Sequence record: PP496438.1
Reading direction: 5' to 3' (one strand)
DNA length: 64,000 nt
Shown: positions 757-12,837 of the stretch, piece by piece
Position numbering within the stretch: position 1 is the stretch's first letter
Layout of the letters: each line of letters begins with the position of its first letter
The notes under the pieces: generated by a model
The model's database searches: none
Told to the model about the DNA's origin: nothing
What the model saw: only the letters and a program-made list of their open reading frames with translations
Made by a program: the position numbers and the translations under genes

Positions 757-3138
757 ATGGCAGCCAAACCACCTGACAAGATCTCACGACGTAAGCTACA
801 GGAACTTCTGGATCGGAAAGAGGATCAACTCAAGTCTGATCGCCGATCCAAGAAGATCATCACCAAGCTCACGTCGTTCGAGAAGGCGAAAGCCGAAGCC
901 AGAGACATCACTAAGCCCTATCACAAGGAAGTGACTCTGGACGACATCATGGACCTTCGCGGAATGCTGGGCGGCAATCGCGCCATGGCCCCGTTGGAAG
1001 GTCAGTTCCTGATGACACCGGAGGAAGAACAGATCTCGGAACTGGGACTGTCGGAAACGCTGGATGAGATTTTCTCCAGTGGTATCGGCTTGCCTCCCGA
1101 CCTGAAGATCGATGACCGGGATCTGAAAGCGCTGCCCAACGTATTCGAGTGGACTACTTCGAAGATGGGCGCTAAGATGAAGCCGTACGCCCGGCAATAT
1201 GAGGTGATGATCAAGTCCTGCTCTGAGTGGTGCCCACCGTGCACTAAGAAGCGCTGGCCGAAACACAAGATGGGTTTCGCGAAATCGTTTCACTACTCGC
1301 CCGCTCTCCCCGTGGATTTTGACGTAGCCAACATTGACGACTACGTTCAGCACTTGGAGAACGGGCGTTGTCCGTGTTGCAAGAAAAGAAAATCGGAGTT
1401 GGTGCGCAGCGGGCAGTTGCCTCTGGTCACCGAACTGGACATGTGTCTGGGTCAACGGGCGGGTAAGTCTGCAACGATTTATTCCCTGATCCCCTACCTC
1501 ATTCACCGCTGGCTTAAGGTTCCTTCCCCAGTGCAGGCGCTGGGACTGCTGGACAACACCCTGCTGTCCGGGGTAGTGGTAGCATTGACCTACGCCAAGG
1601 CCACGTCCCTGCTGTGGCAGCCGATCCACAACGCTATCTCGAACACCGGCTGGTTCAAAGATTACAATGCGCTGTTGAACCATTACCAAGAGTTCTACGG
1701 CGAGGAATTCTTCAAGCTGAAAGACTCGTTCGTGCAGTACGGCCATCGGAACATGATCTTCAGTCCCTCCGGCCCGAACAAGCGTACACTCCGGGGTGAG
1801 ACCCGTATCTGGACCGGCACTGACGAAATCGGTTTCTTCTACCATGGCGATGACGGCGATGACAAGGAACGTGCATCGGCCAACGAGGTATATGTATCGC
1901 TGGGTAACTCCCTGTTCACGGTTAAGAAGGCAGCGGAAACTGCCTTACTGTCCGGCATGGATGGTATCCCTATGACTCTGATGGCGAACATCTCCTCGCC
2001 ATCGAGCTACAAAGATAAGATCATGTCGCTGATCCGTGAGTTCGAGAACGAGCCTACCGTCGTGACCATGCACTTGCCTACCTGGGAGTTCAACCCCAAG
2101 ACCAGCAAGGGTGACTTCAAGAAGGAATACGCGGCGGATCCCGTCAAGGCAGACCGTGACTTCGGGGCTAACCCGCCGATGTCCGAGAACCCCTACCTTC
2201 CTGACCTCGAACCCATGAAGCGTCAGGTGCTCAAGTCCCAGCGCAACATGGTAGAGTACGAGTACAAGCTGATCAAGGCTACTAACGGTGCACCGCAGCG
2301 CTATGCCAAGATCAAGCGACTCCGTGAGTTCATGGACAAGGTGCCGAAGCACGTGATGACCATCGACGCCGGGCACAGCAACAACTCCTTCGCCTTGACC
2401 GTTGGTTATCCTGAGATGTTCCGAGGGAAGCTTCGTCTGGTGTGCACGGGTGTGGTGGAAGTGGCACCGACACATGGCCAGAACACGATCAACTTCACCA
2501 AGATCGCCAAGGAAATGATCTACCCGCTGATCGAGCACTTCAACGTTGGTCTTGTGGTGACTGACCGCTGGAACTCTTTGAAGCTGCTGCATGACATCGA
2601 AGACGAGTACGGTATCTTCACGTTGCAGTACAGTCTGCGACCAGACGACTTCAACTTTATCTACGACTACTACATGGATGAAGACTTCGCGTACGCCCGT
2701 ATTCCCGTGCCTGAGATTCCCATTGATCAGATCATGGACGTCGATATCGATGAGTATCCGAAGTGCTTCGGTCCCGGCAACAAGACCACGGGCAGGCCAA
2801 TGCCTGTAGCGCACATGATCCATCAGTCGCAAACAGTTCAGGTAAATAGCCGGGGCAGTGTGGACAAAGGATTGGGTCTGACCGATGACATCTTTCGTGC
2901 GTTCAACTTGCTCACCTATGTCTGCGTGGATGAGGAGTACGTGGAAGAGTACATGCTGCTAACGGGTTCGGTCGCGGGTGAGAAGCGTGCCATTGGCGCA
3001 ATGGCAAGAGGTGGCATAACTCCGGGTAGTCGGGGCAGTGGTGGCAAGGCCATGAGTACCTCCGTCGGTGCGGTCGCGGGGGCGAGCACAGCCTCCGGCA
3101 GCGGCGGGAACGGTGTATTCAGCCGTACGTCCCGCTAA
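757..3138 (+). CDS. terL: Terminase large subunit
   Basis: Q motif PYARQ, Walker A GQRAGKS, Walker B WTGTDEIG, RNase H-like nuclease TIDAGHSNNSFAL and DDIFRA; sits upstream of portal-sized gene. Confidence 0.88.
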   Translation: MAAKPPDKISRRKLQELLDRKEDQLKSDRRSKKIITKLTSFEKAKAEARDITKPYHKEVTLDDIMDLRGMLGGNRAMAPLEGQFLMTPEEEQISELGLSETLDEIFSSGIGLPPDLKIDDRDLKALPNVFEWTTSKMGAKMKPYARQYEVMIKSCSEWCPPCTKKRWPKHKMGFAKSFHYSPALPVDFDVANIDDYVQHLENGRCPCCKKRKSELVRSGQLPLVTELDMCLGQRAGKSATIYSLIPYLIHRWLKVPSPVQALGLLDNTLLSGVVVALTYAKATSLLWQPIHNAISNTGWFKDYNALLNHYQEFYGEEFFKLKDSFVQYGHRNMIFSPSGPNKRTLRGETRIWTGTDEIGFFYHGDDGDDKERASANEVYVSLGNSLFTVKKAAETALLSGMDGIPMTLMANISSPSSYKDKIMSLIREFENEPTVVTMHLPTWEFNPKTSKGDFKKEYAADPVKADRDFGANPPMSENPYLPDLEPMKRQVLKSQRNMVEYEYKLIKATNGAPQRYAKIKRLREFMDKVPKHVMTIDAGHSNNSFALTVGYPEMFRGKLRLVCTGVVEVAPTHGQNTINFTKIAKEMIYPLIEHFNVGLVVTDRWNSLKLLHDIEDEYGIFTLQYSLRPDDFNFIYDYYMDEDFAYARIPVPEIPIDQIMDVDIDEYPKCFGPGNKTTGRPMPVAHMIHQSQTVQVNSRGSVDKGLGLTDDIFRAFNLLTYVCVDEEYVEEYMLLTGSVAGEKRAIGAMARGGITPGSRGSGGKAMSTSVGAVAGASTASGSGGNGVFSRTSR

Positions 3139-3420: not shown

Positions 3421-5235
3421 ATGATCCGAATGAACAACCGCATGCGGTTATCAGACAAGAATGGTCGCATGACGACCATCGCGTCACCGCAGAGCATGAG
3501 TGGCAGCATGGGTGCAGGGGGTCACCCCATGACTCGCGCCATGGGTGGCAACGCGTCCACCCGAGACAGCCTGCTCGACGGCATCCTGAAGCTCGACCCG
3601 GATGTCATGCGTCAGATCTATATGGATATGTACCTGTTCGATCCGACCATCGGCGGCGCCACTGACTTGCTGGCCCAGAGCCCGTGGTCGGACTACGATC
3701 TAGTAGACGCTGAGCCGGATCAACTGGACATCTTCTACCGGTCGATGGAACTGCTGAACTACCGAGAGCTGATGCCGGAGTTCACCATCGACTACCTGAC
3801 GCTGGGCGCCGCTGTAGGTACGCCGCTGTACAGCGTGTCGGAAAAGGCATTCACCGACATCATCCCGCACTCCATCGCCAGTATTCAGGTTCAGGAAGTT
3901 CCCCTGTATTCCCAAGACCCTGTGCTGACGCTGCTGGTGCCGGAAGAAATGCGCACGTTCGCGACCAGTCAAGACCCGTACGTGGTCAAGATGCGGCAGC
4001 GCATGACACCGAAGATGGTGGAAGCGTTCCGAGCGCAGGAGGTTGCACTTGATCCGGTGACCACGCTGTACGTACCCCGCACTTCGTTCTCGACAGTGCA
4101 GCAAGGCGTATCGCTGTACACCCGCTTGATCCCGATCTACTTGCTGGAACGTCTTCTGTACCGTGGCACGTTGACCGAGGCTACTCGCCGCCAGCGCTCT
4201 ACGTTGCACATTCAAGCTGGTGACGATCTGTGGAACCCGGACGACAATGAGCTGAACAGTCTGGTGCAGCTGTTCCTGCAAGCCGAGCAAGATCCAGTGT
4301 CGGCCATCGTCGCTACCCAGATGAACGTGCAGACTCAGGAGATTCGAGCTGCCGGTGACTTCTGGAAGTGGACGGATAACCTGGAGCAGTTCAACGACAT
4401 CAAGCTGCGAGGCATGGGGATCAACGAATCCTACATGTCAGGTGATGTGACCTACGACAACCTGAGTACCAGTGTGACCATGTTCCAAGAGCAGCAGGAC
4501 TCGCTCCGGGAAATGATGGTACGCAAGACGCTGTACACCAAGGTGTTCCCGGTCCTGTCGATCACCCACGACTTCCGCCGCAAGGAAGAGTCGCGGCATG
4601 CTCGCCGCGAGATGGCTACGGCCAAGGCTGCGCAGAAGCGTACCCTGAACGATTCGTTCGCGTTCCAGGTGAATGACAAAGCATCGCTGGTCATCCCCAA
4701 GGTGGTATGGCACAAGAAGCTGCGTTCCATGTACACCGAAGGTTCGTTCGATATCCTTGACAAGCTAGCGGAAGCAGGTCTACCGGTTACCCTCCGGGCG
4801 TGGGCTGCTGCTGGGGGTTACGACCTGGACAGCGCTATGCAGGCCATGGCCGACGATGCCAAACTTCGGAAACAGGTGTCAGACTTCAAAGCCGAGAACG
4901 GTATCGATGCCGGTACGGAAAACGACTTCAACCTCGACGGGGATACCGAGCTGTCGATGGTCAGGTCCGCATCCGCATTGCTGGATAAGGCAATGGGTGG
5001 CCGGGGTATGAAGCCACTGGGTCTGCTGGGCCGTGAGTTCAGCGAGGCGGATTCCGAAGTGGTACGCCATGATCACTCTGGCAAACGCAAGTGGGTTCCT
5101 GACCAGCACCGTGCCAAGCGGGAGGAGAACGATAAGGCGATGAAGGCGTTGAAGCAGGCCTCTGATCCGGACTTCCGTGCCAAGACGATTGCCGCCGTTA
5201 ACCGTAGACAAGGCGCGAGAAAGACTCGCGGCTGA
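3421..5235 (+). CDS. Portal protein (putative)
   Basis: 604 aa, follows terminase; YLFDPTIGGATDLLA segment resembles portal N-terminal helix; basic tail. Confidence 0.7.
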   Translation: MIRMNNRMRLSDKNGRMTTIASPQSMSGSMGAGGHPMTRAMGGNASTRDSLLDGILKLDPDVMRQIYMDMYLFDPTIGGATDLLAQSPWSDYDLVDAEPDQLDIFYRSMELLNYRELMPEFTIDYLTLGAAVGTPLYSVSEKAFTDIIPHSIASIQVQEVPLYSQDPVLTLLVPEEMRTFATSQDPYVVKMRQRMTPKMVEAFRAQEVALDPVTTLYVPRTSFSTVQQGVSLYTRLIPIYLLERLLYRGTLTEATRRQRSTLHIQAGDDLWNPDDNELNSLVQLFLQAEQDPVSAIVATQMNVQTQEIRAAGDFWKWTDNLEQFNDIKLRGMGINESYMSGDVTYDNLSTSVTMFQEQQDSLREMMVRKTLYTKVFPVLSITHDFRRKEESRHARREMATAKAAQKRTLNDSFAFQVNDKASLVIPKVVWHKKLRSMYTEGSFDILDKLAEAGLPVTLRAWAAAGGYDLDSAMQAMADDAKLRKQVSDFKAENGIDAGTENDFNLDGDTELSMVRSASALLDKAMGGRGMKPLGLLGREFSEADSEVVRHDHSGKRKWVPDQHRAKREENDKAMKALKQASDPDFRAKTIAAVNRRQGARKTRG

Positions 5236-5260: not shown

Positions 5261-6688
5261 ATGAAAAACAATCCACAAGTCACGCGCCTTTCCGCCTTGG
5301 CTGCTGCTGGTATCAACGTCAAGTCAGGTTCTCCGGTTGATGTCGTGCACCAGCACACTCGCACTCTGGGCAACACCATCGAGAAGCTGAGCCAGCCGCG
5401 TCAGTGGGCCATTGCTCACCTGATGAACGAAGCGGCCGACCTGCTGGTTGTAGAAACTGGCAGCCTTCAAGACGACTACATCGACTACTTCAAAGGTGCA
5501 CTGGAGAAGTTCGGTGTGTCCTCCCCAGCGGAACTGACCCAAGAGAAGGCTTCCGAGTTCTTCAACTGGATCAGCGCCAACTGGAAGAAGGGAGAAGGCC
5601 CTAAAGCCGAAGCCAGCGTCGAAACTGCCAGCCAGTTCTCCTTCGTCAAAGTCAGCCAGAACGGTAACACCTACCGACTGGAAGCCTCGGACACCGGCAA
5701 CTTCAAATCCGTCATGATCTGGAAGGGTGGCATGTGGACGAAGCCAGGTCCGGACGAAGCGTTCAAGGAGAAAGAGCCGCACCGCATGCTGGGTGCCCTG
5801 CGCACGCCCAACGGTGCAGAACTGGCTACCCTCAACCTGCCGGAAACCCCAGTGGCGAGCATGGAAGAGATGGCCGAGCTGTTCGGCGCCATGGGTATCG
5901 AAGAGAGCGAGATCCGTCGCTTCTACGGCGGTGGTCCAGAGTGGAATGATCGCAGCGTCTACGATGGCAACATCCCGAGCGTATCCCCGGCCAATCTGGG
6001 TGTGAACCCAACTTACGCCTACACCGACATGCACCCGCTGCGTGCCTACGAGGCGGAAGACACCATCCGTATCAATGGTCTGGACGCCACGTTGCAATCC
6101 ATTGACAACGGACAGGCTGTGTTCACGGTTGACGGCGTAGATACAACCACGGTGCCGCTGGACAACATCGTGGTCGCTGAAGGTGAAGCCTCGGTAGTAG
6201 CCACCGCCATGGTATCTCATCGCGTACTGGTTACCGCTGGTCACGAAGACCTGACTCAGTACAAGTCGCTGCGTCACGACTTCGAGACTGTTACCGCGAA
6301 CCACCAAGAGCTGTCGCAAGTCAAGGTCGGCCCAGCGCTGCAAACCCTCGCCAAGGCGGGTAACCGTCGCGCTCTGGTACTGGCCCACGCCGGTGTGCAG
6401 CGTATCAACGAAGGTCATGCGCTGCTCAAAGCCTCCATCGGCTACGGCAAGGAAGCGGCGACCGCCAGTGTCATCACAGAGCTGGCCGATCTGAACAACC
6501 TGTGTGGCAAGGATCAAGTGTCGGCACAAGACGTGATCGACTCCGCGCCAGTGGTCACTCATCTGAAGCAGGGTGAGTTCAAGGCCGACATGCCGGACGT
6601 GGTTGACTCTTCAGACTTCGAGCTGAACGATCCGCAAGCCGAACAGGCGTCCACGCGCAAGAGCCGCTTCCCAAGCCGCAAGCGCTAA
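5261..6688 (+). CDS. Head-associated (scaffold/internal) protein, putative
   Basis: Start moved to ATG 5261 (GGAG SD; avoids portal overlap); lies between portal and protease; several ETA/ATA motifs. Confidence 0.55.
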   Translation: MKNNPQVTRLSALAAAGINVKSGSPVDVVHQHTRTLGNTIEKLSQPRQWAIAHLMNEAADLLVVETGSLQDDYIDYFKGALEKFGVSSPAELTQEKASEFFNWISANWKKGEGPKAEASVETASQFSFVKVSQNGNTYRLEASDTGNFKSVMIWKGGMWTKPGPDEAFKEKEPHRMLGALRTPNGAELATLNLPETPVASMEEMAELFGAMGIEESEIRRFYGGGPEWNDRSVYDGNIPSVSPANLGVNPTYAYTDMHPLRAYEAEDTIRINGLDATLQSIDNGQAVFTVDGVDTTTVPLDNIVVAEGEASVVATAMVSHRVLVTAGHEDLTQYKSLRHDFETVTANHQELSQVKVGPALQTLAKAGNRRALVLAHAGVQRINEGHALLKASIGYGKEAATASVITELADLNNLCGKDQVSAQDVIDSAPVVTHLKQGEFKADMPDVVDSSDFELNDPQAEQASTRKSRFPSRKR

Positions 6689-6734: not shown

Positions 6735-8771
6735 ATGACAATCAAGAGTGCTACATTTGCGGTGGCTGAATCGCAAGCTCAAGGCCTAGCCAACTCCATG
6801 GGATGGCCGGGTGAGGTAATGGACAACGGTGACGGCACTGTCACTCTGTCGCCACCCGACGCATGGGACGATGAAGAGAATCCCGGCAAGGTGGCCGCGT
6901 CCAAGCTGACCGGCAACAAGGACTGTCACGTCTTCGCCAGTATGGCGGTGCCCAGTGAAGGTGAGTGGATGGCTGTAGTCATTCAAGGTACACCGGCGCT
7001 GGTACTCATCGACCAAGGGTCTGGTGAAGGCTGGTTGACCCTTCAGGCCCCTGCGGACTTCGATGTTCCGGAGAGCGTGCTGATTCCTTTCCAACAACGC
7101 TTGACCCAAACGGAAACTGCTTCAATGGACCTTGAACAAGACGTAGAACTGGCAGCAGGGAAGAAAAAATCGGAAGTGGACCAACTTATCGAACTGCGAC
7201 AGGAATACGATAAGCTTCAATTCTCAAAGTCGAAATTGAGCGTACACGGTAAGAACCCTACCAGCTCTCGTATCATCTCAGCGAAGAAAGGGTTGATAGA
7301 ACGGGAGAAGGAATTCAAGGACAAGTTGAAGAAATTGGTCCCGTCGGGTCGTATTCCTACCATGGAGAGTTTGCAGAATCGTAAGATGCGGGAATCGGGA
7401 ATTAAACCTCCGACCAAAGCTGAGAAGGATTCGGCCAGTGAGCGTCGGATGTTGAAGAGTGAAAAAGACAGGCAGACGAGAGTAGCTACTACAGTAAAGA
7501 AACACGGAGTAACTGAATCGGAAGCCAATACCTTGCACCGGGGCAAATACCCTAAGTCCTATTATAAGGATGAACGGGACCTGGATGAGATCAGTCATAA
7601 GTTGAAAAATCCTAGGCTTACGGATGAGCAAGAAGCTAAGTTGGAGAAAGAGTTGAAAGACTTGCGCACGAAGTTCAAGGAAAAGAAGAAGAAATACGAT
7701 GCCGTCCTCAAGGAAGGGCGGGAGGAATCTTCGGTTCAGCCGGATACCCGTACGCAGGTTCTGGCTAACGTCTCCAGCGACCCGGCCACTCCTGCGTATC
7801 AGGAAGCATCTATCACGGGAGTTACACCAGAAGGCCACATCTCAGTAGCATTCGCTGACGGCGATATCGGTGTGTACCAAGGTAAGTTCGACCCTGCTGG
7901 TCTGATGCCAATCGCGGAAGCGGCAGGCGTTGAAGTTGCCAGCTTCAGACACCACACCATGGTTCTGGCCAACGTTGGCACTGCGGCAGCACCTGAATAC
8001 GCCGAAGCAGAGGTGATTGGTTCCACCGAGGAAGGCCATCTGGAAGTCGCGTTCGCCGATGGTGACGTGGGCATCTACCGTTCCTTGTTCCACCCTACCG
8101 GTATCTTGCCGCTGGGTGTGACTGCCGAGACGGCCAGTGTGCTCATCGAGGTGGCCGCACGTACGGCAATGACCCCGGAGCAGAAGCTCAAGCGTGCACA
8201 GGACCTGCTCAAGCTGCGTACGCTGCACGACAAGTACGAGACCAACACCGACGCCCTGAAAGGCAAGAAAGGTCCGGAGAACAAAGCCAAGCGGGACAAG
8301 AACAACGAGGACAAGGCCAAGCTCCGTGCCAAGCTGGACAAGATGGGTGTCACATCCCTGCCGAGCAAAGCTCACCTGCAGCGTACCATCAAGCAGCACA
8401 GCGATCTGCCGACCCGTATGCGTGCATCGGACAAGAAGCCTGCTGCTAAGGTACCAACGAATAAGGCAGCACGGGACGCGGCCAAGAAGAAGTATGCGCC
8501 TGCTAAAGAGGACAAAGGATTAGACATGCGGATTAAGGCTCCGGGGTATGCTGAAAGGAATTTCGGCCCTGCTGCCATGAAACGAAAAGAGGAAAGAAAG
8601 TCTTTGCCCAAAGCTACTCAGGACAAGATCAAGAAGTTGGAAGCAAAGATAGAAGAGACGCTTACGGACATCCATAAGGGTTCCATCAGTAAAAGGGACG
8701 TTCAGACTGCCCGCGACCAAGTTAAGGCTTGGAAAGAGCAAGTCAAAGAACTTTCTACCCCGGCTAAGTAA
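6735..8771 (+). CDS. Lys-rich mosaic internal head protein with two Tudor/SH3-like repeats
   Basis: Repeats VLANV..PxY...GH.xVAFADGD.GxY at about 7755-7913 and 7959-8118; Lys-rich, AT-richer blocks; ATG 6735 with AGGA SD. Confidence 0.6.
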   Translation: MTIKSATFAVAESQAQGLANSMGWPGEVMDNGDGTVTLSPPDAWDDEENPGKVAASKLTGNKDCHVFASMAVPSEGEWMAVVIQGTPALVLIDQGSGEGWLTLQAPADFDVPESVLIPFQQRLTQTETASMDLEQDVELAAGKKKSEVDQLIELRQEYDKLQFSKSKLSVHGKNPTSSRIISAKKGLIEREKEFKDKLKKLVPSGRIPTMESLQNRKMRESGIKPPTKAEKDSASERRMLKSEKDRQTRVATTVKKHGVTESEANTLHRGKYPKSYYKDERDLDEISHKLKNPRLTDEQEAKLEKELKDLRTKFKEKKKKYDAVLKEGREESSVQPDTRTQVLANVSSDPATPAYQEASITGVTPEGHISVAFADGDIGVYQGKFDPAGLMPIAEAAGVEVASFRHHTMVLANVGTAAAPEYAEAEVIGSTEEGHLEVAFADGDVGIYRSLFHPTGILPLGVTAETASVLIEVAARTAMTPEQKLKRAQDLLKLRTLHDKYETNTDALKGKKGPENKAKRDKNNEDKAKLRAKLDKMGVTSLPSKAHLQRTIKQHSDLPTRMRASDKKPAAKVPTNKAARDAAKKKYAPAKEDKGLDMRIKAPGYAERNFGPAAMKRKEERKSLPKATQDKIKKLEAKIEETLTDIHKGSISKRDVQTARDQVKAWKEQVKELSTPAK

Positions 8772-8793: not shown

Positions 8794-9552
8794 ATGAACG
8801 TGTTTGAAATGATTGCCCAGCAGAACGCCGCGATGAAACCCATCGACGTGCACAAGCTGGTTAAAGGCAAGGATGTAGATCCAAAGCTCAAGGAGATGAC
8901 CACGGCCAAAGTCGGTATGCCCGGCTTGGCCCAGGCCATTACGTTCGCGGAGTGGTTGCCGTTCGCGGCCAAGACGTATCACTGCTCGCCGGATCCGAAG
9001 GATTACATTCTGGTCCCGAACATCGTGATGCCGTCGGAGATCCCCAACCGGAATGGCGTGGGCTTCCCCTTGCAGCAACTGGTACGCTTCAATCCTGAGA
9101 CTGGTTGCCAAGGCTTCCGTACGGCAGTCGGCAAGGGTACGTACGCGGACCACCAGAACAACACCGTCGCCCCGCTGGCGAAAGGCGTGATCGTGGATTC
9201 GTTCATGCGCCCGCTGGAAGGCTTCAAGGGCGGCGTGTGGAAGTTGCTGTTCCTCTTGGCGTACGACCGGTCCAAAGACCAAGCGCTCACCAACGCCATC
9301 TTGGCAGGCACTCGTACCAACTACAGCATGGGCGCGTACCTGACCAAGTACACGTGCTCGATCTGTGGCCGGGACCGGGGCCAGTGTGTGCACTTGAGCG
9401 CGCAGAAAGGTTCGGTGAACTTCCGCAAGGTAGGGAACCAGCTGGCGTACTCGCAGGCATACGAACCAATTTTCTTCGAGACGTCCTCGGTAGAAGATCC
9501 GGCTTTCGTATCGTCGATCACCGGCGCTGATCACCTGCTTATCACTCGGTAA
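8794..9552 (+). CDS. Prohead maturation protease (HK97/assemblin-like serine protease)
   Basis: NRNG, YADHQNN (His), YSMG (Ser) and ETSSVEDPAF motifs; CSIC..C..H; head module position. Confidence 0.75.
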   Translation: MNVFEMIAQQNAAMKPIDVHKLVKGKDVDPKLKEMTTAKVGMPGLAQAITFAEWLPFAAKTYHCSPDPKDYILVPNIVMPSEIPNRNGVGFPLQQLVRFNPETGCQGFRTAVGKGTYADHQNNTVAPLAKGVIVDSFMRPLEGFKGGVWKLLFLLAYDRSKDQALTNAILAGTRTNYSMGAYLTKYTCSICGRDRGQCVHLSAQKGSVNFRKVGNQLAYSQAYEPIFFETSSVEDPAFVSSITGADHLLITR

Positions 9553-9584
9553 GCAGGAACTCCGTAACAAGTAGAGGTAACATC

Positions 9585-9743
9585 ATGGGTATCACTACCA
9601 TTCTCCTGATCGTGTTGATAGTTCTGCTCGTCTGCGGCTTGCCCGTGTTCCCGTACTCCACAGGTTGGGGTTACGGTCCATCTGGGCTGATCACGGTGAT
9701 CGTCGTGATCCTGCTGATCCTCGTCTTGACCGGACGAATGTGA
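9585..9743 (+). CDS. DUF3309-family small membrane protein (absent from ORF track)
   Basis: Hand translation MGITTILLIVLIVLLVCGLPVFPYSTGWGYGPSGLITVIVVILLILVLTGRM; GAGG SD; WGYGPSG between two TM segments is the family signature. Confidence 0.8.
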   Translation: MGITTILLIVLIVLLVCGLPVFPYSTGWGYGPSGLITVIVVILLILVLTGRM

Positions 9744-9748
9744 CAACC

Positions 9749-9782
9749 GCCCGCTCTGGCAAACGCTGGGGCGGGCTTTTTC
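9749..9782 (+). terminator. Rho-independent terminator
   Basis: GCCCGCTCTGGC-AAAC-GCTGGGGCGGGC followed by T run. Confidence 0.8.
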
Positions 9783-9829
9783 GTATCTGCTAATTACAAA
9801 ACATGGATAAATAAATTGGAAGATGGGAC

Positions 9830-11041
9830 ATGATCAAATTCGTGGAGATATCCGCACCTAGTTCGGACTTCGCCAAGACCCTCAAGAAAGGCATACGGGT
9901 CGTGGTCAACATGGGATCTACTAAGGAACCGTCCTATTGGATGGCGACTGTAGCAAAGAACAATGCAGCGAAGGGCACCGTCAACCTGAACTTCGATGAT
10001 GGAGACGTGGCCGAGTACAAAGCTATCAAGTCCAAGGTGGGTATTGTCGGGATCGGAGTTGCCAAAGTCCGCAAGACTGAAATCCCATTGTCTCAGGTTG
10101 GCAAGTGGCTTACTAGTGAGGAAACTACATCACCGTCCTCCTACCTGTCTGACCCTGTCCAGAAGTTTTTAGCTAAGTGGGTAGACTCCTTTGATAAGGA
10201 CGGGGCCAATCCTTCAAATAAGAAATATTTGTTAAAGACAATGAAGGACTTATTACCTAGCATACCCGAAGAGTATAGAAAACATACGGGTATCCTTTTC
10301 CGAGGGGTTAGGCTACCAGTAGAAGTTGTAACTTCTATCCTCGCGGGTTCTCGACTAAAATTTAAAGATGAATTCATTTCGTATTCCTCCGATAGAGATG
10401 CTGCTGTAAAATTTGCGGCCTATGTAGACTATGATAAAGGAAAAGAACAAATAGGGATAGTAATAAAAGAGGATAGTAACTCTGTTGCGGTTAATATCTT
10501 TGAGGTATGGGATAACATCTCGTCAAAGTACAAAGATATACATTCTCAATCATTTGTAGATGAGGAAAAAGAAGTAGTACTTCAAAACTCCAACCTGGGA
10601 CTAGCTACTTCACAGATTGATATGCTACTTATATCTAAAGGTAAAATAAAATCATTAGGGAAGCAGGAGCCTCCCGGCTGGAATAAGTTTCTTAAATCAA
10701 GTGGAATACTTAAAGACATATATTGCATTCCCAACACTAAAGATAATATTAAGGGTGTACAAGAAGTCCTTAGTTTGAACACGACAACTCTTATGAATCC
10801 GCAGAAGATGTCGGCTATACTAACCAAACTAGGATTTCCTAAATCTAACGGGGAAACATTTAGGACGTTGTACCTTCCTGACCTAGAGCTTTCTATAAAA
10901 GCGTCTATGGTTCCTCAAGGAATACTGTTCGAGACTGGTAAGGGCTGGCGATTTGCCAAGTTTGAGTATAAACAGGTAGGGATAGCAGAGGATGAAGCAT
11001 CCGCTATCAATTTATTTAATATGATAGCCAAACAAAGATAA
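9830..11041 (+). CDS. N-terminal Tudor/SH3-like module fused to an R-S-ExE ADP-ribosyltransferase domain
   Basis: ILFRG (Arg), FISYSSD (SxS), DEEKEVVL (ExE); residues 13-94 are 56/82 identical to a segment of the 11128 protein; AT-rich after about 10140. Confidence 0.7.
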   Translation: MIKFVEISAPSSDFAKTLKKGIRVVVNMGSTKEPSYWMATVAKNNAAKGTVNLNFDDGDVAEYKAIKSKVGIVGIGVAKVRKTEIPLSQVGKWLTSEETTSPSSYLSDPVQKFLAKWVDSFDKDGANPSNKKYLLKTMKDLLPSIPEEYRKHTGILFRGVRLPVEVVTSILAGSRLKFKDEFISYSSDRDAAVKFAAYVDYDKGKEQIGIVIKEDSNSVAVNIFEVWDNISSKYKDIHSQSFVDEEKEVVLQNSNLGLATSQIDMLLISKGKIKSLGKQEPPGWNKFLKSSGILKDIYCIPNTKDNIKGVQEVLSLNTTTLMNPQKMSAILTKLGFPKSNGETFRTLYLPDLELSIKASMVPQGILFETGKGWRFAKFEYKQVGIAEDEASAINLFNMIAKQR

Positions 11042-11044
11042 TAG

Positions 11045-11074
11045 TTGCACGGGCTGTTTTGGGTGTGCTATAAT
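11045..11074 (+). promoter_or_regulatory. Sigma70-type promoter
   Basis: TTGCAC-N18-TATAAT with extended -10 TG. Confidence 0.75.
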
Positions 11075-11127
11075 AGCACCATGGCACTATTCAAGCGCCG
11101 CCCACTGTCCCAATGAGGAAAGCAACC

Positions 11128-12837
11128 ATGACCAGATTGACCCTAGCAACCGTCAACGCCGAGATCGCAAAGTCCGGTGGCAAAGAAACTCTGGTCAAGG
11201 GTAAGGGCTACTTCTACTGGATAGGTGGCCGTGCCGACGCCGATCCTCAAATCTGGACTTCCATTTACGTTGCTGCGCTAAACCAGATGACGCTGGCCCA
11301 GTGGCTGGAAGACTGGAAGCGCAATGACGACCAATACAACAAACCTACTCCCGACAAGGAAACCCGCAAAATGGCTATCAGACACGTTCAGACCCTCGCA
11401 GCTCCTGCTCGTCCAAAACCACCTACCGGTGCAAAAGCAGGTGGGGGTAAGTCAATCGAAGAGAGAATCGAATGGAATGAAGGTAGGATCAAGGAGGCTA
11501 CTGCGGAACTGAAAGCCACCAAAGATCCGAAAGCTATTGACAAGATCAAAAAGCAGATTGATATCTACAAGGGTAACATCGCCGGTTTCAAGAAAAGGCT
11601 GAACCCGGAAAAGAAACCAGCACCGGCCAAAGGTCCTAGCGGTGCTGCTTCCAAGAAGCGTACCACTGCTGCCCATGCACAGGAGACTGCGTCCCCGGCT
11701 ACCGACTTCGCCAAGTCGTTGAAGAAGGGCGTTCGTGTACTGGTCAATCTCGGCAACACCAAAGAGCCGTCCTACTTCCTCGGCGCCATTACCAAGAACA
11801 ACGCCAGCAAGGGTTCGGTCAACGTGCTGTTCGATGACGGCGACGTTGCAGAGGTCCGTGCGATCAAATCCAAGGTCGGCATCGTGGGCATCGCCATCGA
11901 CAAGGTACGCAAGTCGGAAGTGCCAGCTGATCAGATCAGCAAGTGGCTGGCTGGTGCGGCACCAGCGACCAAGACCCCCGCCAAGCCTAACGAGCTGAAG
12001 AAGTCGCTGGATATCCTCGGTCCGAAGAAGGACTCCAAGGTGCCCTCCAAGCCCGTGAGTAAGGACACCGAAGTACAAGATATGTATGGTCAGCTGGTGG
12101 ACAAGATGACAGCTATCTTGAAAGCCAAGAAGAAGTACAGCCCAGCGTTGGATAAGGCAATTGATGACTACGCCAAGCTGCCTACGTCAACCAGCAAGGC
12201 CAAGAAGATCGAAGCTTTGCAGGCAGCTATCGGACTCGCTGATTCTCAGCTGGGTTCATCTAAACCATTCAGCCCGGCGGAAGCCCGGAAGGTCATCGGT
12301 GCTATCCCCGGCTGGAAGGCGTCCAGCGTGAAGAACAAAGCGTCGGCCACGTTCACCAAAGATTACCCGAACGGTGTCACTGCCACTGCTTATGTCTTCC
12401 CGCAGTACGTGTCGTTTGAATACCCACAAGGCGAGAACGATCACGTCAGCGACTTGTCCAAGATCGCAGCTTACATCAAGCAGATCGACGATGATCAAGC
12501 AGTAACACCCGACCAAGGAAAAGCACTGGATGCTCTGGCCAAAGCGTTGAAGGGTTGGCCGAACAAGGTCCTCCCACGGGATGCTGACGAAGACAACTTC
12601 CTGCTGCGCGGATTTGAAGATGATGATCTTCCGGCTGATGTGGGGCCAACTGCTGACGCCATCGAAGCACATGCAATCTCGATCTTCAAGAAGATGAAAA
12701 GTGTTGACAACTTCAAGAAGAGCAAGATGTACCACGGCGACAACACATACTCCTTCTCGGCTGGCGGCACCGTGGGCTACGTGTACTTCGATGAAGATGG
12801 CGTCGGCATGGTCCGGGCAACACCGTTCGAAGAGTAA
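11128..12837 (+). CDS. Lys/Ala-rich multidomain protein carrying the shared Tudor/SH3-like module
   Basis: ATG 11128 follows ACTGTCCCAATGAGG leader; module at 11704-11949. Confidence 0.65.
   Translation: MTRLTLATVNAEIAKSGGKETLVKGKGYFYWIGGRADADPQIWTSIYVAALNQMTLAQWLEDWKRNDDQYNKPTPDKETRKMAIRHVQTLAAPARPKPPTGAKAGGGKSIEERIEWNEGRIKEATAELKATKDPKAIDKIKKQIDIYKGNIAGFKKRLNPEKKPAPAKGPSGAASKKRTTAAHAQETASPATDFAKSLKKGVRVLVNLGNTKEPSYFLGAITKNNASKGSVNVLFDDGDVAEVRAIKSKVGIVGIAIDKVRKSEVPADQISKWLAGAAPATKTPAKPNELKKSLDILGPKKDSKVPSKPVSKDTEVQDMYGQLVDKMTAILKAKKKYSPALDKAIDDYAKLPTSTSKAKKIEALQAAIGLADSQLGSSKPFSPAEARKVIGAIPGWKASSVKNKASATFTKDYPNGVTATAYVFPQYVSFEYPQGENDHVSDLSKIAAYIKQIDDDQAVTPDQGKALDALAKALKGWPNKVLPRDADEDNFLLRGFEDDDLPADVGPTADAIEAHAISIFKKMKSVDNFKKSKMYHGDNTYSFSAGGTVGYVYFDEDGVGMVRATPFEE

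Follow-up and report, generated by a model that had tools for sequence, protein, structure and literature searches.

An optional chimeric gene in the head module of Pseudomonas phage vB_PpuM-SKa-4 encodes a predicted ADP-ribosyltransferase of a new sequence family

A stretch of 64,000 nucleotides from the genome of Pseudomonas phage vB_PpuM-SKa-4 (PP496438.1), called the window below, was analysed here with emphasis on SKa4_00009 (gp9), a plus-strand gene located at 9830-11041 and annotated as a hypothetical protein. Positions 8794-12837 matched that record with 100% identity and unchanged coordinates. SKa-4 is a 202-kb myovirus infecting P. putida and a member of the jumbo 'G3' cluster from the CEPEST collection (PMC7616413). 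The open reading frame (ORF) of gp9 is stop-free over 403 amino acids (aa). Its translation could be divided into an N-terminal Tudor/SH3-like module (residues 1-100; 9830-10129), a domain with a predicted ADP-ribosyltransferase (ART) fold (residues ~103-303; 10136-10738) and an AT-rich C-terminal tail domain (residues ~320-403; 10787-11038), all on the plus strand. It is highly probable, on the strength of modelled structure and motifs, that residues ~103-303 adopt an ART fold, keep an intact R-S-ExE site and represent a new sequence family. We also favour, with less assurance, a reading of gp9 as an optional chimeric gene of the head module whose product would be delivered by the virion and would modify host proteins in the manner of T4 Alt.

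The AlphaFold2 (AF2) model of full-length gp9 was poor (predicted local distance difference test score, pLDDT, 51.5), and its best matches in the PDB were already ARTs. The model of residues 101-320 reached a pLDDT of 76.8 and a predicted template modelling score of 0.75. When this domain model was compared with the PDB by Foldseek, all 40 matches listed (ranks to 49) were ART-fold chains, in support of the ART domain proposed in the initial annotation. The best match was the Vis toxin (E 4e-4, probability 1.0), and others included TreX, pertussis S1, PltA, cholera A1, KptA, C3, HopU1 and VIP2. VIA-align, which is independent of Foldseek, was run against 48,161 representative chains and its best 28 rows consisted entirely of ARTs or ART-like folds: Vis (Z 7.7, 147 residues, 3.8 A), Tre1 (Z 6.3), CPILE-a, Certhrax, C3bot2, C2-I and VIP2 (Z 5.7-6.0), HopU1, C3stau2 and ART2.2 (Z 5.5-5.6), and SpvB (Z 5.4) were among them. 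The argument for an ART fold is drawn from the uniformity of the match list and from the coverage of the whole domain, not from the size of Z. An independent model of residues 101-303 from the ESM Atlas retrieved PF03496, PF01129 and scabin-type clusters.

Relatives of this domain were rare. When 1.84 billion representative proteins were scanned in full with HMMER, the copy from a sister phage was accompanied by only two others, here designated P0006 (341 aa, E 1e-18) and P0007 (246 aa, E 4e-7), which align over gp9 residues 103-277 with 27-29% identity. A word-indexed search of 5.8 billion proteins yielded the sister-phage copy only, and no relative was confirmed in an IMG/VR scan with the family alignment. 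Searches of the PDB sequences gave nothing with phmmer and chance-level matches only with the family profile, one of which (2kxi_A, E 0.43) falls on the STS motif. Since no ART family scored in the Pfam hmmscan of gp9 (up to E 1) or in a six-frame search of the genome, the domain is filed here, by sequence criteria, as a new family inside the ART superfamily. A sub-threshold resemblance to phrog_27460 ('unknown function') was observed for gp9 residues 143-198 (E 0.052) and for P0006 residues 162-256 (E 1e-4); this group could represent a phage ART family that has gone unannotated.

The three motifs highlighted in the initial annotation were recovered, each of them once in gp9: LFRG at residues 156-159 (10295-10306), SYSS at residues 184-187 (10379-10390) and EKE at residues 246-248 (10565-10573). 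The alignment of gp9, P0006 and P0007 displayed six invariant positions of interest, namely R158, G159, P163, S184, E246 and E248. R158 (codon 10301-10303, plus strand), the arginine of R-S-E, lies on strand 1 of the domain (model 55-63); in F157-R158-G159 an aromatic residue precedes the strand-1 arginine, and the triplet is aligned to WRG of T4 ModA. S184 opens an S-x-S/T variant of the STS motif (strand 82-86 followed by helix 89-100), which reads SYSS, SFTT or SATS in the family rather than a contiguous S-T-S; T4 ModA and ModB share this variant, the SYSS of gp9 being aligned to S-x-S of ModA and to SFTT of ModB. The two glutamates of the ExE motif are located at the start of model strand 148-152, after a helix/loop at the position of the ARTT (ADP-ribosylating turn-turn) loop; this motif appears as EKE, ERE and ESE in the three lineages and is aligned to E-x-E of ModA. 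Such short motifs are not considered chance occurrences here because they are invariant across homologues of 27-29% identity and because of the fold result. The catalytic residues were also unchanged in all four sister-phage orthologues.

Profile-profile comparison (hhalign) of the gp9 family with T4 ModA placed R, S-x-S and ExE in collinear order (E 0.0023, probability 12%). With ModB, R and SFTT were aligned, the probabilities for the two Mod proteins ranging from 9 to 12%, and no relation to T4 Alt was seen (E 0.17, probability 0.4%). By predicted fold and motifs, gp9 is placed within the R-S-E clade of ARTs and outside the sequence families Alt, PF03496 and PF01129.

The ART domain differs sharply in composition from its surroundings. 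The segment 10140-11041 had a G+C content (GC) of 0.382, against a mean of 0.552 (standard deviation 0.021, minimum 0.487) for all other segments of equal length in the window (z = -7.9). It was the sole place where GC over 300 nucleotides fell below 0.42, so that the AT-richness claimed initially holds in a sliding-window analysis; the counts on which the claim was based, 21/60 at 10201-10260 and 36/60 at 6001-6060, were exact. Within gp9, GC was 0.50 over residues 1-100 and ~0.38 in the ART domain. G+C at third codon positions (GC3) was 0.62 for residues 1-100, 0.36 for residues 101-280 and 0.37 for residues 281-403, with values of 0.60-0.78 in the neighbouring genes. Because GC3 falls after residue ~100, the shift is one at the codon level, beyond amino-acid content alone. 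The switch occurs at residues ~100-106 and homology to both distant relatives starts at residue 103. The initial annotation had interpreted this region as a recent graft onto a native N-terminus. The graft itself is supported, as composition changes right at the domain boundary and the module preceding it is 64-65% identical to that of gp10. Its recency is unsupported, since the module is only that similar to its paralogue and since a distant contig carrying P0006 (L009, see below) shares the layout of protease, module plus ART, and large protein. These observations support a view of gp9 as a chimera between an N-terminal module of the phage's own and a foreign-looking AT-rich ART domain.

The chimeric gene is also optional. 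Among nine sister phages, it was found at full length in four (SKa-4, Illi-2, Amme-1 and Pori-4) and was absent from Aura, Lauda, KoPa-5, Voja-6 and Peetri. Alignment of the flanks with Aura, which displays 31 unrelated bases instead, delimited a cassette at 9787-11043 (plus strand) comprising the whole gene and its leader. The indel unit among sister phages is accordingly all of gp9 including its N-terminus, not the ART domain alone. At its left edge the cassette is bordered by a terminator-like hairpin with a T-run (9749-9786), at its right edge by a promoter-like TTGCAC-N18-TATAAT (11045-11074) preceding gp10; both are on the plus strand and conserved in Aura. The latter pattern occurred once in the window, against 0.02 matches expected by chance, and is a candidate promoter for gp10. 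The hairpin is a strong one and follows gp8, which is kept in all sister phages. Aura, SKa-4 and Illi-2 form one species cluster (PMC7616413); as Aura is a non-carrier, the cassette was moved or lost on a short time scale. The four carriers displayed 24 variable codons in gp9, of which 11 were synonymous only and 13 nonsynonymous, and the gene was 98.5-99.3% identical among them, against 97.0-97.9% for the upstream flank. Its intact state in four phages is counted here as support for a gene probably under selection. No data separating carriers from non-carriers were found in PMC7616413 or PMC12894663.

The N-terminal module belongs to a small repertoire of the SKa-4 lineage. Seven copies were identified in six SKa-4 proteins: one each in gp9, gp10 (11683-11955), gp129, gp142 and gp149, and two tandem, diverged ones in gp6 (7737-8234, plus strand), a lysine/glutamate-rich protein encoded between the portal region and the protease gene. 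The copies of gp129, gp142 and gp149 are located at or near the N-terminus and are 33-39% identical, those of gp6 being more diverged. A conserved KVRK.E.P...Q..KW stretch closes the module. The label 'Tudor/SH3-like' is tentative: Pfam Tudor PF21744 matched two paralogues below threshold (gp9, E 0.033; gp10, E 0.016), and the AF2 model displayed five short strands at a pLDDT below 40. Outside the SKa-4 phage cluster, only weak matches in two Vibrio phages were obtained. In the genome record, gp129 (103069-103890) lies beside baseplate hub genes, gp142 (120753-121901) beside a NUDIX gene and gp149 (126540-127703) near a head-tail connector gene; the module is N-terminal in each. The C-terminal parts of these three proteins are unrelated and unannotated, and gp149 includes a zinc ribbon (PF13248, E 7.5e-6).

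As at least six SKa-4 proteins carry the module, including a scaffold-like protein with two copies, it can be asked whether it serves as a lineage-specific portable handle for virion incorporation or ejection, which would plug varied cargo into the particle. This reading is possible, with the balance of probability tilted against it.

Gene context was the most telling result for the relatives: all three lineages of the ART family sit within packaging/head modules of distantly related large phages. In SKa-4, gp9 is located one small gene (gp8) downstream of the gene for the head maturation protease (gp7; 8794-9552, plus strand; phrog_18299, E 6e-62), whose relatives are T4 gp21-type 'prohead core proteases' in many jumbo phages. 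The 150-kb contig L009 encodes, in this order, terminase large subunit (TerL, phrog_17415), portal (phrog_16240), several small proteins, a phrog_18299 protease, P0006 and an 827-aa protein, P0006 starting eight bases after the protease gene. The identities between L009 and SKa-4 were 35% for TerL, 32% for portal and 37.5% for the protease. P0007 is encoded between TerL and portal on two further contigs (L010 and L011). The head context found here fits the survey by Iyer et al. (PMC9503650), in which ARTs were reported from more than 40% of jumbo phages and in which ~44% of phage ARTs, being fused to MuF or portal, located beside head genes or found in a T4-alt-like context, were inferred to be packaged.

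P0006 and its neighbour are themselves linked by a shared segment: residues 54-117 of P0006 resemble residues 477-540 of the 827-aa protein (36% identity, E 5e-11; L009:10001-13559). This layout of a shared segment with different cargo parallels that of gp9 and gp10. No homology was detectable between the SKa-4 module and either the N-terminus of P0006 or the 827-aa protein, and BLASTP of P0006 against gp142 and gp149 gave nothing. A gene for a NAD-dependent DNA ligase was observed a few genes away from both distant ART homologues (L009 and L010), and T4 alt adjoins ligase gene 30; this proximity may be coincidence.

T4 Alt is packaged into the virion, processed by gp21 and ADP-ribosylates RNA polymerase. 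By analogy, gp9 would be made together with the head proteins and brought into the prohead by its N-terminal module, where the adjacent protease may cleave the linker at residues ~96-105, and would then enter the cell along with the DNA. The ART domain would bind NAD+ through R158 and S184; E248 would act as the catalytic glutamate and E246 would steer the reaction to arginine, so that one or several host proteins would become ADP-ribosylated. Vis, Tre1, enzymes of the iota/C2/VIP2 type, HopU1 and ART2.2 are ExE enzymes that modify arginine. Arginine specificity is predicted for gp9 because it displays ExE and because its best structural matches are arginine-specific enzymes; we infer an arginine-directed mono-ADP-ribosyltransferase. 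Candidate targets include host RNA polymerase and a defence or translation protein. Neither RNA polymerase beta (PF00562) nor a T7-type RNA polymerase was matched in the SKa-4 genome, in searches whose T7 control gave no signal and for which phiKZ-type enzymes are very divergent. Dependence of SKa-4 on the host RNA polymerase is only suggested by this result; as no such polymerase is Pfam-detectable in the phage, an Alt-like action on the host enzyme is plausible. Packaging, processing, activity, arginine specificity and target are thus all put forward as predictions. Prediction of a cleavage site by the T4 (L/I-x-E) or phiKZ (S/A/G-x-E) rules was dropped, too many candidate sites being encountered.

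Several observations weigh against a virion-delivered ART. On the side of the enzyme, the cargo domain went unrecognised by Pfam, NCBIfam, PHROGs and the PDB sequences, and a six-frame search of the genome with PF03496 and PF01129 stayed empty up to E 10. The structural scores are middling, Z reaching no more than 7.7, a range for which VIA-align cautions that a common arrangement may be responsible, the alignment behind the domain model holds three distinct sequences only, and the hhalign probability is as low as 12% for ModA with no relation at all to Alt. On the side of delivery, the presence of gp9 in the virion is deduced from gene context, five sister phages do without the gene, a terminator parts it from the upstream head genes, and the module recurs in proteins whose genes lie close to tail and replication genes, so that its role as a head signal is not a given. 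Part of this evidence would suit an active ART that is not packaged and acts in the infected cell like T4 ModA or ModB, the module then being a nucleic-acid or protein binding domain. Such an enzyme would account for the module in gp129, gp142 and gp149, encoded beside baseplate and replication genes, for the terminator directly upstream of gp9, and for ModA, not Alt, being the sole T4 protein aligned collinearly. It is nevertheless judged unlikely, because all three family members are located in terminase-portal-protease modules of phages with only 30-37% identity in those genes and because copies of the module are present in gp6 and gp10, on either side of the protease. Delivery by the virion is the preferred reading.

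The history of the gene is bound up with its tail domain. BLASTP aligned the tail with a variable insert of Pori-4 gp10 (P0014 residues 379-434; 36% identity over 59 residues, pairwise E 2e-6), the latter displaying a native GC of 0.55-0.61. The tail had no wider relatives. Its AF2 pLDDT remained below 50, and the ESM Atlas gave loose structural leads only, to small alpha/beta folds (KTSC, DUF4304, YbjN and SycN-like). Any link from the tail to the C-terminal domain conserved in gp10 is tentative, the comparison being not significant; an hhalign comparison of the alignment A6 with Peetri gp10 was discarded as circular, since a gp10 segment was already included in A6. As the AT-rich part of gp9 comprises a tail with a relative in this lineage, the donor was probably, as far as we can infer from sequence, a different phage from the same broad group, lower in GC. 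Neither distant relative qualified as donor: P0006 has native composition on a contig of 58.5% GC, and the contig of P0007 has 45-49% GC.

It can be argued instead that no graft took place in this lineage, the whole module-ART-tail gene having been imported from a related phage and its low GC having another cause. The indel indeed comprises the whole gene, L009 is organised in the same way around another shared N-terminal segment, the tail has its relative in Pori-4 gp10, and gp9 is slightly better conserved among carriers than the upstream flank. If the gene were foreign as a whole, all of it should be AT-rich, whereas GC3 steps sharply from 0.62 to 0.36 at the domain boundary within a single ORF, and we regard such an import as improbable. 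It bears on the history of gp9 only, not on its function. A chimera formed by grafting is still preferred.

An ART fold without protein-arginine transfer (an NAD glycohydrolase, a pierisin/Scabin-like nucleic-acid ART, a ModB-like RNAylating enzyme or an inert remnant) would find some backing in the presence of Scabin, KptA and Arr among the fold matches and in the S-x-S/T variant replacing a contiguous S-T-S, and is very improbable in view of the ExE motif, which is not QxE, of best matches that are arginine-specific protein ARTs and, as regards a remnant, of catalytic residues all invariant across ~27% identity.

Compared with known systems, gp9 resembles T4 Alt as a phage ART of the R-S-E type expected to act on host proteins and in the association of its gene with a T4 gp21-type prohead protease, and packaging is its most likely mode of delivery. 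Alt differs in its 682 aa, its other architecture and the lack of detectable sequence relation; its gene lies beside ligase and baseplate genes, whereas gp9 lies in the head module. T4 ModA and ModB are likewise small R-S-ExE ARTs with motifs collinear by hhalign (probability only 9-12%). Unlike gp9, they are stand-alone early proteins of ~200 aa that lack an N-terminal module or a tail and are not packaged. Vis and the C2/C3/VIP2/iota group, together with Tre1, HopU1 and ART2.2, provided the best structural matches over ~130-147 residues, including the helical N-terminal subdomain, and share the R, STS-like and ExE motifs. Their identity to gp9 is 10-17% and none of the Pfam models of these families scores; they are secreted or injected bacterial toxins, whereas gp9 is a phage gene with the bacterial host as expected target. 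The MuF- or portal-fused phage ARTs and 'polyvalent proteins' (PMC9503650) share with gp9 the combination of an ART with a particle-associated part, a location among head genes and exchangeable cargo. In gp9, this part is a Tudor/SH3-like module instead of MuF or portal, neither of which was found in it with Pfam or PHROGs, and there is a single effector domain.

The remaining genes of the neighbourhood can be described briefly. According to the record, the terminase large subunit (757-3138) and the portal (3421-5235) precede two hypothetical proteins situated between portal and head maturation protease. Within gp6, a second, milder GC dip (0.46-0.48) was seen at 7050-7650, in a lysine/glutamate-rich, coiled-coil-like stretch; the dip looks like an effect of amino-acid composition rather than foreign DNA. 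Between the protease gene and the gp9 cassette lies gp8 (9585-9743), encoding 52 almost wholly hydrophobic aa. Downstream, SKa4_00010 (gp10; 11128-12837, plus strand) holds the paralogous module. In gp10 and its sister-phage orthologues (P0008-P0014), the N-terminus (phrog_9154) and the C-terminus are conserved and the Tudor-like module is 100% conserved; the two linkers are hypervariable among the nine sister phages, the length varying from 550 to 702 aa. The C-terminal 'FP..V.F.YPQGE' domain has one additional copy in Peetri gp10 and a divergent additional copy in Pori-4 gp10. Neither an ADP-ribosylglycohydrolase, nor a Macro domain, nor a second copy of the ART cargo was found in the SKa-4 genome.

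Reprogramming or disarming of the host by phage ARTs is familiar and widespread, and the kind of ART encountered here is not new; the handle of gp9 is. Also new is an ART sequence family invisible to profile libraries, represented by three lineages among 1.84 billion representative proteins, all of them linked to head modules. The chimera is visible in the DNA itself, with a composition step exactly at the domain junction, and illustrates the assembly of an effector from a handle of the phage's own and imported cargo. The presence of gp9 in four of nine near-identical P. putida phages, with both states within one species cluster, offers ready-made, isogenic-like controls. If the module is indeed a handle, gp9 would represent a foreign ART plugged into it, and L009 would do likewise with an unrelated shared segment; this would constitute a second general route for head loading beside MuF fusions and the capsid-targeting peptide of T4, and chosen proteins could be loaded into SKa-4 particles.

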